Shown: positions 40,262-53,772, numbered from the stretch's first letter. The stretch is 64,000 bases of DNA from Macrostomum lignano (GCA_002269645.1 NIVC01002867.1:1-64000), one strand, 5' to 3'. Program-made: numbers and translations. The notes: generated from the letters alone by a model not told the origin.

Positions 40262-40423
40262 GGACAGACAGACAGACAGACAGACAGACAGACAGACAGA
40301 CAGACAGACAGACAGACAGACAGACAGACAGACAGACAGACAGACAGACAGACAGACAGACAGACAGACAGACAGACAGACAGACAGACAGACAGACGGA
40401 CAGACAGACAGACAGACAGACAG
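40262..40423. repeat. (GACA)n at the start of peptide cassette copy 1
   Basis: Direct reading; equivalent tracts at 42540-42961, 44760-44826 and 51362-51749. Confidence 0.95.
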
Positions 40424-40869
40424 CAAAATTCGCAAGCACAAGGTAACTGGATTTTCTCATTTAATTTAATCAAACGACCGCCCGCTATACTTGCTGTCAT
40501 TGCCAACTGAACACCCACGCAAACAACTCCTCAATCAATGATTTTTTCTCTCTGTCCAGGCCTCACCTCATTTCAGATATCTCAATTCCTTTATCCAGGC
40601 ACTTCAAGCTTATAGCAGCAAAAGCTTAGTGAAGTATGGCGAGTTCAGATATATCAGTTGTTCCAAGAACCCGCGCGTATCTTGGCTTGACAAGATAACC
40701 GGCCCAACAAGAGGACTCACATATCTCACGAACGTGTCGCACGTGTCGTAGGGATATCAAACAGAAGGCAAGCAGTGGTACCGTATCCTTATCAACCTGT
40801 CACTGTGACTGCGCAACAGGATTGATATGATGTGTGAATTTGCCATCCGGTTGCTTCTAGAAAATTTTC

Positions 40870-40875
40870 TATAAA
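40870..40875 (+). promoter_or_regulatory. TATA box of peptide gene copy 1 (also 43409-43414, 52197-52202)
   Basis: tataaa ~85 bp upstream of an AAG|gtaagc donor (40960); acceptor cag|aATG at 41220 defines a 5'UTR intron; AATAAA at 41589-41594. Confidence 0.6.
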
Positions 40876-41221
40876 TGCGATTACTGCTTTATGCAAATAT
40901 TTAACTGAACTAAACAAGCCAAACTGATATTATCAAGCAATCGACGAAGAAACAAGAAGGTAAGCAGCGTCTCTTCATTGCTTGTTTGTGCAATTTTTTC
41001 GTCTCTTGTTGTTCTCTCAGTTTTTCTCTGTATCATTCTACACCTCTAACCTAATCCATCTATTTAAAATTCTCTGTATCTCTCCGACTCCTATAGTCTC
41101 CTATTTTCCATCCGTATTTCTGCATTTCGGTGGGCAATTTTAGATTTCACTTGTCACTACGTAGTTACGCAACATTTTTAATGAATAATTACTTAAATAT
41201 ATTCCTTCCCGACCGGACAGA

Positions 41222-41521
41222 ATGAAGTGCGTTTTCCTGATTTTCCTGGGACTGGCGGCATTCATGGTGCAGCCGTCGGAGCAGAAGGTCAACTGGGACA
41301 TCTCGGTGGACATCACGAAGATCATCAACTACGGCCTGAACAAGCTGGACACGATGTTCTCCTGCGCTAAGTACGACGGCGTCAGGGGCGCCGGCTGCTG
41401 GCACAACAACTGGGAGAAGCGCGACCTCATGTGCAAGAGGCTGAGCGCGTGCTGGTCCAGGCGCTGGTCCTACAGCCACAGTCTGCTGGGCGGCCGCTGC
41501 TACTGCTGCCACTGTCCTTGA
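41222..41521 (+). CDS. Secreted 99-aa Cys-rich cationic peptide, defensin/AMP-like, copy 1
   Basis: Hydrophobic signal peptide; 8 Cys in the mature C-terminal half; strong GC3 bias; TATA, 5'UTR intron and polyA signal present. Confidence 0.85.
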   Translation: MKCVFLIFLGLAAFMVQPSEQKVNWDISVDITKIINYGLNKLDTMFSCAKYDGVRGAGCWHNNWEKRDLMCKRLSACWSRRWSYSHSLLGGRCYCCHCP

Positions 41522-41691
41522 ACTCGCTGTCCCGGACTTCCATTCTGTGCGTGTCTTAATGACAGGCAATTGAAAAGCAAACATACCTAATAAAGGCCTT
41601 GTTGGATCAGCCTGCCAAATTGTGGCATTATTAGCAAAATGCGGCTCATTTTTGCGTTTTATTAAACTAACTGCAACTAATGCGGTAAATC

Positions 41692-50800: not shown

Positions 50801-51361
50801 TAGGCCTATAGGATACAATATCCATTTAAACTACTATCAGCAGCTAACGTGATAAAGGAACCATCATTCGAATATTTTTCGGGCACAAAACCGTGGGAAG
50901 GCTTTGAAGAAAGCTCAACAAAGCCGTGTGTGCCTAATTTAAGATCACGGAAATTAAATATATTACTTTTTTGGCGTAAAAGATGTTGTAAAAAGGTAAA
51001 TTGCCAACAGACTGAAACAGACTGAAACAGACTGAAACAGACTGCAACAGACAAATTCAGAAATTTTCATTGACAATTTTTGTTTAGCTGGACCTTTCAG
51101 ACCCGGTTTAGGTGGACATCGCAAAAAGTCCATGTAAACTGAAATGCATTTTTTTCTGAACATGAATGCCGATGAATGTTGCGCTTTGCGGCACTCATTC
51201 CTGACATCCATTGCTCTGTTTTGTGGTCCTTATAAACCACTCAACGTTGTCTGGAGCAAAAATATTCGGTGGTCCACCTACGCTGTCCACCTAAACCGAA
51301 AGGTCCAGCTAATGCGGCAACTGAACCGACGAAAGGTCCAAGTAAACACACAGACAGTAAC
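44827..51361. mobile_element. Unclassified ~6.5-kb non-autonomous TIR element inserted in a (GACA)n tract
   Basis: Left ctgtctgtgtgtttagcgggacc and right ggtccaagtaaacacacagacag share 15 identical inverted bases plus ggacc; a TTAG(G/C)TGGACC motif is repeated near both ends; no long ORF. Confidence 0.6.
45640..49830. repeat. Hierarchical tandem array: ~668/580-bp units, each with 4 or 3 ~88-bp subrepeats
   Basis: Unit starts at ~45640, 46308, 46888, 47470, 48138, 48806 and 49474; ttagctggacc occurs ~25 times. Confidence 0.95.
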
Positions 51362-52548
51362 ACAGACAGACAGACAGACAGACAGACAGACAGACAGACA
51401 GACAGACAGACAGACACTAAGACAGACAGACAGACAGACAGACAGACAGACAGACAGACAGACAGACAGACAGACAGACAGACAGACAGACAGACAGACA
51501 GACAGACAGACAGACAGACAGACAGACAGACAGACAGACAGACAGACAGACAGACAGACAGACAGACAGACAGACACTAAGACAGACAGACAGACAGACA
51601 GACAGACAGACAGACAGACAGACAGACAGACAGACAGACAGACAGACAGACAAACAGACAGACAGACAGACAGACAGACAGACAGACAGACAGACAGACA
51701 GACAGACAGACAGACAGACAGACGGACAGACAGACAGACAGACAGACAGCAAAATTCGCAAGCACAAGGTAACTGGATTTTCTCATTTAATTTAATCAAA
51801 CGACCGCCCGCTATACCTGCTGTCATTGCCAACTGAACACCCACGCAAACAACTCCTCAATCAATGATTTTTTTCTCTCTGTCCAGGCCTCACCTCATTT
51901 CAGATATCTCAATTCCTTTATCCAGGCACTTCAAGCTTATAGCAGCAAAAGCTTAGTGAAGTATGGCGAGTTCAGATATATCAGTTGTTCCAAGAACCCG
52001 CGCGTATCTTGGCTTGACAAGATAACCGGCCCAACAAGAGGACTCACATATCTCACGAACGTGTCGCACGTGTCGTAGGGATATCAAACAGAAGGCAAGC
52101 AGTGGTACCGTATCCTTATCAACCTGTCACTGTGACTGCGCAACAGGATTGATATGATGTGTGAATTTGCCATCCGGTTGCTTCTAGAAAATTTTCTATA
52201 AATGCGATTACTGCTTTATGCAAATATTTAACTGAACTAAACAAGCCAAACTGATATTATCAAGCAATCGACGAAGAAACAAGAAGGTAAGCAGCGTCTC
52301 TTCATTGCTTGTTTGTGCAATTTTTTCGTCTCTTGTTGTTCTCTCAGTTTTTCTCTGTATCATTCTACACCTCTACCTAATCCATCTATTTAAAATTCTC
52401 TGTATCTCTCCGACTCCTATAGTCTCCTATTTTCCATCCGTATTTCTGAATTTCGGTGGGCAATTTTAGATTTCACTTGTCACGTACGTAGTTACGCAAC
52501 ATTTTTAATGAATAATTACTTAATTATATTCCTTCCCGACCGGACAGA

Positions 52549-52848
52549 ATGAAGTGCGTTTTCCTGATTTTCCTGGGACTGGCGGCATTCATGGTGCAGC
52601 CGTCGGAGCAGAAGGTCAACTGGGACATCTCGGTGGACATCACGAAGATCATCAACTACGGCCTGAACAAGCTGGACACGATGTTCTCCTGCGCTAAGTA
52701 CGACGGCGTCAGGGGCGCCGGCTGCTGGCACAACAACTGGGAGAAGCGCGACCTCATGTGCAAGAGGCTGAGCGCGTGCTGGTCCAGGCGCTGGTCCTAC
52801 AGCCACAGTCTGCTGGGCGGCCGCTGCTACTGCTGCCACTGTCCTTGA
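52549..52848 (+). CDS. Secreted 99-aa Cys-rich peptide, copy 3
   Basis: Protein identical to copies 1 and 2; flanks match copy 2. Confidence 0.85.
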   Translation: MKCVFLIFLGLAAFMVQPSEQKVNWDISVDITKIINYGLNKLDTMFSCAKYDGVRGAGCWHNNWEKRDLMCKRLSACWSRRWSYSHSLLGGRCYCCHCP

Positions 52849-53663
52849 ACTCGCTGTCCCTGACTTCCATTCTGTGCGTGTCTTAATGACAGGCAATTGA
52901 AAAGCAAACATACCTAATAAAGGCCTTGTTGGATCAGCCTGCCAAATTGTGGCATTATTAGCAAAATGCGGCTCATTTTTGCGTTTTATTAAACTAACTG
53001 CAACTAATGCGGTAAATCAATGAGTGATGAATCCATGGGTGATAGTGAATCATGAGTGACGAATGCATGGGTGATAGTGAATCATGAGTGATGAATGCAT
53101 GGGTGATAGTGAATCATGAGTGATGAATGCATGGGTGATAGTGAATCATGAGTGACGAATGCATGGGTGATAGTGAATCATGAGTGACGAATGCATGGGT
53201 GATAGTGAATCATGAGTGATGAATGCATGGGTGATAGTGAATCATGAGTGATGAATGCATGGGTGATAGTGAATCATGAGTGATGAATGCATGGGTGATA
53301 GTGAATCATGAGTGATGAATGCATGGGTGATAGTGAATCATGAGTGACGAATGCATGGGTGATAGTGAATCATGAGTGATGAATGCATGGGTGATAGTGA
53401 ATCATGAGTGATGAATGCATGGGTGATAGTGAATCATGAGTGATGAATGCATGGGTGATAGTGAATCATGAGTGATGAATGCATGGGTGATAGTGAATCA
53501 TGAGTGATGAATGCATGGGTGATGATGAATCATGAGTGATGAATGCATGGGTGATAGTGAATCATGAGTGATGAATGCATGGGTGATAGTGAATCATGAG
53601 TGATGAATCCATGGGTGATAGTGAATCATGAGTGATGAATGCATGGGTGATTGTGAATCATGA

Positions 53664-53772
53664 GTTCAGGCCATAGTTGATGACCTTGGTCAGGTCTGCG
53701 AAGCTCCGAATGCATGGGTGCACCATGCAGGACTGTCGCAAGGCCCAGGAGAATGAGGCGGATCGGTGACAT
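53664..53772 (-). pseudogene. Diverged, truncated inverted paralog of the peptide gene
   Basis: cag|aATG TCA CCG ATC CGC CTC ATT CTC CTG GGC CTT GCG (MSPIRLILLGLA vs MKCVFLIFLGLA), then GAC CTG ACC AAG GTC ATC AAC TAT GGC CTG AAC (DLTKVINYGLN vs DITKIINYGLN) in another frame; breaks off into the satellite. Confidence 0.75.

Follow-up and report, generated by a model that had tools for sequence, protein, structure and literature searches.

What kind of protein is encoded by three identical genes on a single contig of the flatworm Macrostomum lignano, and how did the gene come to be repeated there? The stretch concerned, referred to below as the window, comprises 64,000 nucleotides of contig NIVC01002867.1 (assembly GCA_002269645.1), and window coordinates are those of the contig. 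An initial annotation described, in the part from 40262 to 53665, a triplicated cassette for an eight-cysteine cationic secreted peptide, likened it to the defensins with a cysteine-stabilized αβ (CS-αβ) fold and to big defensins, and proposed an antimicrobial, toxic or mating-related role with amplification for dosage. The evidence set out below leaves very little doubt that the product is a real, selected and secreted four-disulfide protein and that it belongs to an unnamed family. The account as a whole, in which the array grew from a single copy and the four-disulfide product of this family serves as a host-defence effector in Macrostomum, is held with slightly better than even confidence.

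Three copies of one gene

The three units share one layout: a (GACA)n microsatellite, a promoter with a TATA box, a short non-coding first exon, a putative intron in the 5' untranslated region (5'UTR), the coding sequence (CDS), an AATAAA polyadenylation signal about 70 nt past the stop codon, and a 32-bp satellite that closes the unit. The microsatellite and satellite tracts were delimited with Tandem Repeats Finder (TRF). Unit 1 opens with (GACA)n at 40263-40423, followed on the + strand by the promoter and first exon (40424-40959, with TATAAA at 40870-40875 and the exon ending in AAG before the GT donor at 40960), the putative 261-nt intron (40960-41220, GTAAGC...ACAG, its acceptor one base before the ATG), the CDS of copy 1 (41222-41521) and AATAAA (41589-41594); 26.4 copies of the satellite close it at 41692-42535. 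The end of this satellite runs directly into the start of the next (GACA)n tract at 42529-42560 (GTGATGAGTGATGACAGACAGATAGACAGACA), a junction missing from the single-copy homeologs described below. Unit 2 begins with (GACA)n at 42541-42961 and continues, also on the + strand, with promoter (TATAAA at 43409), first exon and putative intron (43499-43759) within 42962-43760, the CDS of copy 2 at 43761-44060 and AATAAA at 44128-44133, before 16.5 satellite copies at 44227-44754. The second occurrence of the junction, together with the left remnant of the unit 3 microsatellite (TRF 44760-44827), occupies 44748-44827, while the right part of that microsatellite lies at 51346-51749. Promoter (TATAAA at 52197), first exon and putative intron (52287-52547) of unit 3 follow on the + strand within 51750-52548, then the CDS of copy 3 (52549-52848), AATAAA (52916-52921) and 20.3 copies of the satellite (53015-53665).

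The three CDS are identical at 300 of 300 nucleotides and encode the same 99-amino acid precursor, so the genes at 41222, 43761 and 52549 that had been reported as identical in protein are identical as DNA also. Outside the CDS the likeness extends over a unique core of 1265 bp, from promoter to 3' flank, which units 2 and 3 share at 100% identity and to which unit 1 conforms at 99.4%; unit 1 differs from the other two at 8-9 positions over the span from −800 to +180 around the CDS. The elements of the module first described, namely (GACA)n, TATA promoter, CDS, AATAAA and 32-bp satellite, can be seen in every unit. The description of a three-module array stands in that three whole units are present, but units 2 and 3 are not adjacent, since an element of 6.5 kb lies between them.

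A secreted protein of an unnamed family

The precursor has a signal peptide at about residues 1-21, a conserved helix at about residues 27-47, and an eight-cysteine core at residues 48-99 with the spacing C-x10-C-x11-C-x5-C-x15-C-x-C-C-x-C. As first reported, the core has exactly this cysteine spacing and a net charge of +6, and it contains four Trp and three His. After removal of the signal peptide the mature protein would have about 78 amino acids, a mass of about 9 kDa and a pI of 9.0, and would consist of a short helix and a four-disulfide core.

A first word-index protein search returned only Macrostomum proteins and one relative of 65% identity. These three sequences were turned into a profile, with which a search of 1.84 billion cluster representatives gave 37 matches at E≤1e-3, seven of them at E≤1e-10; two of the 37 look like false positives, and the size of the family is about 35 representatives at 50% clustering. 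Most members have 89-130 amino acids (about 90-105 for the typical secreted protein) and combine a signal-like hydrophobic segment, a helix motif [IV]P..A..YA..KVD..F(SC), and an eight-cysteine core with the signature SC[SK][KR][YF]DG.A.CW.N.W.KRD..C...WSY...GG[KR]CYCCKC. The window protein matches the looser form SC..[YF]DG.A.C[WF].N.W.KRD..C...[WF]S[YF]...GG.C[YF]CC.C. Residues C59, R67, C93 and C95 are invariant, C48, D68 and G91 are present in at least 90% of family sequences (alignments A2 and A3), and W60, W64 and W82-S-Y are strongly conserved across phyla.

The named relatives come from a nematode (Diploscapter pachys WR25_04783), a springtail (Folsomia candida Fcan01_22762), and two fungus gnats (Bradysia coprophila LOC119080540 and B. 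odoriphaga HA402_002906), and all named members are annotated as hypothetical or uncharacterized; the Macrostomum member is Mlig017780. The remaining members are on metagenome or Logan contigs, one of them with kinesin and TFIIE genes as neighbours on a eukaryotic contig of 4.9 Mb. A second word-index protein search, with alignments, added no further named taxa, and no member from Drosophila, C. elegans, Schmidtea or Schistosoma is among the profile-search matches that carry source names. The nematode, springtail and fungus-gnat sources are soil-associated, and M. lignano is a marine interstitial flatworm. This range would reflect either repeated loss of the family or horizontal spread among small soil and interstitial animals.

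Some members depart from the usual plan. P0015 is a trypsin-like serine protease with the family domain at its C-terminus; the Bradysia members (P0035 and P0042-45) have two extra cysteines and, before the domain, an N-terminal hydrophobic stretch that is a putative membrane anchor; the Folsomia protein (P0039) consists of three short tandem repeats of the domain.

Known families offer no place for the protein. Searches of Pfam gave no meaningful match for it at E≤10 or for 26 family members at E≤1, the best hit being noise (Meleagrin, E=0.08); a phmmer search of PDB sequences and an hmmsearch with the profile gave 0 matches at E≤10; and no paper was found that contains the family motifs, the gene identifiers, or the homologue or sample accessions. 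The picture of a secreted, eight-cysteine, cationic and tandemly amplified gene product has therefore been borne out, as has the placing of the protein outside any described family. As to its being a new family, no described one is matched, but it is not a flatworm novelty, since relatives exist in a nematode, a springtail and fungus gnats. The neutral amphipathic segment that had been set apart from the cysteine-rich domain is not separate from it: this segment is a conserved part of the domain and directly follows the signal peptide in relatives.

Proposed disulfide connectivity and predicted fold

The cysteines are numbered C1 to C8 for residues 48, 59, 71, 77, 93, 95, 96 and 98. Eight members, all of one clade, lack both C3 and C7 and keep C4 and C8 (Fisher P 6e-7 for C3/C7). 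Five others lack both C4 and C8 and keep C3 and C7; these represent at least 2-3 lineages and include the closest relatives outside Macrostomum. The sole discordant sequence is P0024, an odd prediction of 223 amino acids. Such paired losses, which are evolutionary rather than chemical evidence, point to disulfides C71-C96 and C77-C98. The Folsomia repeats retain only C2, C3, C6 and C7, which points to C59-C95 and, by elimination, to C48-C93; these two pairs are probable and derive from that one distant member. Through C71-C96 and C77-C98 the helical part of the core would be fastened to the C-terminal strand, to which C48-C93 and C59-C95 would also tie the N-terminal part, giving a 1-5, 2-6, 3-7, 4-8 ladder.

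AlphaFold2 produced a poor model from three sequences, with a predicted local distance difference test (pLDDT) score of 62, and a core with pLDDT 78-89 from an alignment of 33 sequences; the overall pLDDT of the two models is 62-69. The predicted core runs from strand 57-61 through helices 64-73 and 75-80 to strands 81-85 and 92-97, and is preceded by an N-terminal helix (31-46) of low confidence. Helix 64-73 has C71 at its end, and the second, short helix contains C77; C93-Y-C95 and C96-H-C98 fall in predicted strand 92-97, so that a CxC in the last strand is present. Between C3 and C4, in the helix region, there are five residues in the window protein, 2-8 across the family, and three in some members such as P0003 (CKGRC). 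With a helical segment double-stapled to the last strand, the proposed architecture resembles that of CS-αβ peptides.

Between C2 and C3 lies the K-R-D motif (residues 66-68), in which the dibasic K-R combines the usual K66 with the invariant R67 and is followed by the near-invariant D68. If a proprotein convertase cut at K66-R67, a two-chain product joined by C48-C93 and C59-C95 would result.

Comparison with known cysteine-rich peptides

Neither sequence profiles nor fold comparison gave a significant match to CS-αβ peptides. The curated Pfam defensin models (Defensin_2, Gamma-thionin, Toxin_3 and similar) are unmatched by the 26 family members at E≤1. The term defensin-like, which the initial annotation used, derives from the proposed disulfide register and the predicted order of strands and helices and finds no significant sequence or fold match. 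The likeness to a γ-core that it noted in the GRCYC tail was rejected as strict evidence on account of the spacing, since the next cysteine follows after one residue (after 11 at AGC59) and not after 3-9 as in the consensus.

The mussel peptides mytilin-B and MGD-1 are the nearest in general character: they too are small, secreted and held by four disulfides. The G-x-C-Y-C tail of the window protein resembles RGRCYC of mytilin, its predicted order of strand, helix, strand and strand is theirs, and two cysteines of its helical region would pair in parallel register with a C-x-C of the last strand. Mytilin and MGD-1 have the connectivity 1-5, 2-6, 3-7, 4-8, which equals the ladder proposed above. 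The mytilin-B array, C-x3-C-x3-C-x4-C-x11-C-x-C-x-C-x2-C, has far shorter loops, the mature chains have 34-40 amino acids compared with about 78, the N-terminal helix and the W/N/W/KRD and WSY motifs have no counterpart in the mussel peptides, and charge is not conserved in the unnamed family.

Big defensins of molluscs, horseshoe crab and amphioxus are alike in having a secreted precursor with a less charged N-terminal part and a cationic cysteine-rich C-terminal part. Their C-terminal pattern is that of a six-cysteine β-defensin, C-x6-C-x3-C-x13/14-C-x4-C-C, and follows a separate hydrophobic globular domain, whereas the window protein has eight cysteines and an N-terminal segment that is one short conserved helix joined straight to the first cysteine, with no propeptide or dibasic site before C1. 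The two-part layout first compared with big defensins therefore does not apply: there is no processing site, the segment is part of the domain, and the cysteine pattern is not that of a β-defensin.

Plant defensins and drosomycin share with the window protein eight cysteines, the same predicted order of secondary structure, and the C1-x10-C2 start. Plant defensins have the pattern C-x10-C-x5-C-x3-C-x9-C-x6-8-C-x-C-x3-C with pairs 1-8, 2-5, 3-6 and 4-7, unlike the pairs 1-5, 2-6, 3-7 and 4-8 proposed here, and their Pfam model, Gamma-thionin, is unmatched. The crustacean Rcys1 peptides (TjRcys1 and PpRcys1) were mined from genomes and are antimicrobial as recombinant proteins (PMC12842719, PMC12195476). 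They resemble the window protein as secreted cysteine-rich precursors of about 96-104 amino acids from small aquatic invertebrates, with predicted helices and strands, but differ in having 11-12 cysteines, motifs such as CCCEGAFLGSKFCCKV, and other predicted disulfides. As possible relatives they were rejected, the sequences being unrelated.

Origin of the array

Assembly GCA_002269645.1 contains five type A and three type B copies of the gene, the proteins of the two types being 98% identical and their CDS at least 96% identical. Type A copies occupy three loci, this array and two homeologous loci on NIVC01000104.1, with a zf-C4 nuclear-receptor gene to one side and an adducin-like (Aldolase_II) gene to the other; each of the two other loci has one unit with the same (GACA)n and satellite. 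The type B copies on NIVC01000199.1 and NIVC01003819.1 adjoin a Dcc1 gene, and the third, on NIVC01004273.1, is at a contig end with no neighbour gene called. The outer flanks of the three-unit array match the flanks of the single-copy type A loci. The shared flank on the left (40200-40262) reads ...aatgatgggcg and then GACAGACAGATAGACA, and that on the right, from about 53705, gaatgcatgggtg and then caccaggactg.

The junction of satellite and (GACA)n occurs exactly twice inside the array (42529 and 44748), and the single-copy loci lack it. This pattern is as expected from one whole-unit duplication followed by unequal crossing-over. The array therefore goes back to a single copy, the condition still kept at the two homeologous loci. 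A first duplication would have fused the satellite end to the (GACA)n start, and the third copy may have come from unequal crossing-over between units, or gene conversion may hold units 2 and 3 identical. Later, a transposon-like element bearing terminal inverted repeats (TIRs) would have inserted between units 2 and 3.

This element (44833-51357) is not part of the gene unit and splits the (GACA)n tract of unit 3. Its TIRs, of 23 nt, lie at 44833-44855 (CTGTCTGTGTGTTTAGCGGGACC) and 51335-51357 (GGTCCAAGTAAACACACAGACAG) and are 87% complementary; its subterminal repeats are TAGGTGGACCACCTA-like, and its interior, at 45766-49825, carries an 88-bp tandem repeat in seven blocks spaced at about 668 bp. 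The element contains no long open reading frame (ORF) and looks like a non-autonomous DNA transposon inserted into (GACA)n.

Gene structure, expression and selection

The predicted splice sites of the 5'UTR intron, a feature of the initial annotation, are conserved, and the intron itself, 261 nt in each unit, is what these sequence signals imply. The donor AAG/GTAAGC is at 40960, 43499 and 52287, the CAG acceptor ends at 41220, 43759 and 52547, and the acceptor-start sequence CAG/AATG is invariant in four loci, including that of the 65%-identical relative, which comes from an unrelated sequencing run. Only about 60% of the aligned upstream non-coding bases are identical in the type B paralogue L002, yet about 110 bp of promoter, the TATA box, exon 1, and the AAG/GTAA donor are conserved there. 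The promoter footprint common to the diverged paralogues (40790-40960 in the window and 9613-9797 in L002) comprises CCTGTCACTGTGAC, TGATGTGTGAATTT and TTTTCTATAAAT. At about 540 bp or less, the unit promoter would be a compact candidate for transgenesis in M. lignano.

The GenBank gene models of this assembly were built from RNA-seq-derived transcripts (PMC5730564), and the models Mlig017780g1 and Mlig017780g2 therefore imply transcription, at least of the type B paralogue. Mlig017780g2 (L012, NIVC01003819.1, 6001-6336) equals Mlig017780g1 save for a frameshifting 2-bp (GT) deletion that follows codon 28, and would be a young pseudogene or allele unless the deletion is a long-read indel error. 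The GC content of third codon positions (GC3) in the CDS is 0.91, compared with 0.62-0.75 in neighbouring host exons, and the flanks have 40% GC; the high value may reflect codon optimisation of a highly expressed gene. ORFs of 131 amino acids that lie antisense over each CDS (for example 41189-41584, − strand) were put down to the GC3-rich composition of the coding strand and rejected. Neither an Rfam scan nor a tRNA scan gave a match anywhere in the window.

The gene is under strong purifying selection, with ω of 0.05-0.2. Compared with the type A homeologs, the CDS shows 2-3 synonymous changes and 0 non-synonymous ones. The comparison with the type B paralogue gives 10 synonymous and two non-synonymous changes, both of the latter before residue 27, and ω of 0.05 (Nei-Gojobori), and that with the 65%-identical relative gives ω of 0.22, with dS saturated.

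Function and alternative explanations

The product is best pictured as an abundantly secreted, protease-resistant extracellular effector, the core of which would have turned strongly cationic and Trp/Arg-rich in the Macrostomum lineage. The core charges of the three closest Macrostomum-clade sequences are +6, +10 and +8, and the core contains the Trp/Arg cluster CWSRRWSY. Such a core would make host defence the most likely role, perhaps through an antimicrobial attack on membranes at the surface of the epidermis or gut, the extra gene copies adding to the dose. Small size, secretion, four disulfides, the cationicity of the clade, the Trp/Arg cluster, copy number and codon bias would all favour this role. 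This functional reading, an extracellular effector that is secreted in bulk and whose action in Macrostomum is most likely antimicrobial, is the preferred one, with chances of its own somewhat short of even. A fuller version of this proposal is rather doubtful; it would make the protein the first examined member of an ancient unnamed protostome domain family, with its own or an independently acquired CS-αβ-like fold, the 1-5/2-6/3-7/4-8 ladder and a conserved W-x-N-x-W-x-K-R-D surface, which in Macrostomum was recruited, rendered cationic and multiplied to serve as a new class of invertebrate host-defence peptide.

Several results weigh against this account. One rival is homology to defensins: the protein would be a very divergent but true member of the CS-αβ defensin superfamily, closest to the eight-cysteine mytilin and MGD-type peptides of mussels. 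Its GGRCYC tail can be set beside RGRCYC of mytilin-B, the predicted strand-helix-strand-strand order and the proposed double staple fit the motif, P0003, the closest relative, has CxxxC, and an hhalign comparison of the family profile with mytilin-B (sequence verified, PDB 2eem) gives 55% probability over 24 columns, a score reached by only 1-2 of 200 shuffles. The shuffle test is post hoc, however, mytilin having been picked after the GRCYC resemblance was noticed, and the hhalign register, which aligns family C3/C4 with mytilin C2/C3 and C5/C6 with C5/C6, predicts C3-C6, contrary to the C3-C7 pair indicated by co-loss. The same comparison with MGD-1 (sequence verified, PDB 1fjn) gives 2% probability, and no Pfam defensin, gamma-thionin or scorpion-toxin model is matched. 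Foldseek searches of the PDB with the two AlphaFold models gave best E values of 1.1 and 1.5 and no defensin, toxin or plectasin chain, and a search of BFVD with the better model gave a best E of 0.45 and again no defensin, although Foldseek is weak on very small folds. The CxxxC helix of CS-αβ peptides is replaced by Cx5C in the window protein and by spacings of 2-8 in the family, the loops are two to three times those of mytilin, and there is an extra conserved N-terminal helix. Descent from defensins is on balance quite improbable. The count of three genes could itself be an assembly artefact, a mis-joined or over-expanded repeat at a locus of one or two units: this long-read assembly is known to be redundant and is the one in which the array is seen, units 2 and 3 are 100% identical across 1265 bp, and one type B copy differs merely by the 2-bp deletion, a possible sequencing error. 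Against such an origin, the microsatellites (161, 421 and 472 bp) and satellites (844, 528 and 651 bp) differ in length between units, unit 1 carries its own 8-9 substitutions, a unique 6.5-kb element parts units 2 and 3, and the array lies between single-copy flanks within one contig. The older UniRef model P0005 (A0A1I8JNR6) reads through two copies in tandem, suggesting that another annotation has such an arrangement too. An artefact is thus very improbable, and the three-unit array is in all probability real.

The effector proposal has its strongest competitor in a role as a specific ligand or binding module, whether as a targeting domain or as a signal of the hormone, pheromone or cytokine type, acting through a conserved surface formed by W-x-N-x-W-x-K-R-D and W-S-Y and not by charge-driven attack on membranes. 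Family members vary in core net charge from −5 to +10 (median near +2 to +3), P0010 and P0027 being neutral, so that cationicity is no family trait and an antimicrobial role can be no more than plausible for Macrostomum. What is conserved across phyla is W60, W64, R67, D68, W82-S-Y and G91, and such conservation, together with low ω, is unusual for antimicrobial peptides and fits specific binding. The domain is also reused, on the trypsin-like protease P0015 and behind the putative membrane anchor of Bradysia, and it is repeated in tandem in Folsomia P0039. The proposal of a dosage-amplified antimicrobial is confirmed as to amplification and weakened as to antimicrobial action by the charge range, purifying selection and domain fusions. 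A ligand, on the other hand, has no known receptor, processing site or neuroendocrine context; tandem amplification and very high GC3 suggest bulk secretion, and core charge in the Macrostomum clade has moved to between +6 and +10, with Trp and Arg clustered as in WSRRW. A ligand role is rather unlikely. Finally, the protein might be a reproduction-related secretion (seminal-fluid, prostate, cement-gland or egg-associated) amplified under sexual selection, with which small size, secretion and tandem amplification are compatible, and many small secreted prostate-limited transcripts are described for M. lignano (PMC5977470). Neither Mlig017780 nor the sequence was found in the partial supplements of four M. 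lignano papers, among them a seminal-fluid screen and a three-species RNA-seq study; older studies use other identifiers, and the absence is uninformative. Strong purifying selection and cross-phylum conservation contrast with the fast evolution reported for reproduction-related Macrostomum genes (PMC7336406, PMC8662610). A reproductive role is very unlikely.

Other features of the window

Several further elements surround the array. A GC-rich (62-67%) element resembling a long terminal repeat (LTR) retrotransposon occupies 15600-19510 on the − strand, with frames that seem open for the most part. Its components are a gag-like DUF7041 ORF (18817-19509), a 323-amino acid ORF with no Pfam match that is possibly a protease (17897-18868), reverse transcriptase and RNase H (16869-18116), and an integrase (15724-16869), all on the − strand. 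An ORF of 384 amino acids at 6557-7711 (− strand) has a MULE transposase domain at E=3.8e-6, just at the Pfam cut-off. Four consecutive long ORFs of 202, 347, 290 and 163 amino acids lie at 58239-61399 (− strand); a Pfam scan of the three longest gave no match, and the four may represent the exons of a single gene or else a mobile element of unclassified type.

Simple repeats are also abundant. Three large simple arrays, marked by strong skew in both GC and AT, lie just upstream of the gene array at 36476-39705. They comprise 38.6 copies of a 16-bp repeat (99% matches), 13 copies of a 47-bp repeat and 194 copies of (GAGAG)n. Another (GACA)n tract lies at 35121-35300. The long tandem array at 20989-22634 has repetitive ORFs on both strands (NPWFINSNNPWLIECS, LLIAIILGLSSAV) and is probably a satellite rather than a gene.

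Significance

A tandemly amplified gene for a cysteine-rich secreted peptide is of a familiar kind; within the resources searched, the family to which this one belongs is without a name, a Pfam entry, a structure or a paper. The locus illustrates cleanly how a gene is amplified by way of flanking satellites, with the ancestral single copy preserved in homeologs of the same genome. If the protein were an ordinary gland product, the main value of the finding would be a new domain-of-unknown-function entry. If the account given here is true, it adds a new cross-phylum family to the cysteine-rich secreted proteins of animals, with a proposed disulfide map that can be tested, and presents a case of convergent or very deep CS-αβ-like architecture. 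M. lignano is a convenient model in which to pursue this, with RNA interference, transgenesis and a ready-made compact promoter. To our knowledge, little is known of the humoral effectors of free-living flatworms, and the protein would then be a candidate immune effector for these animals.

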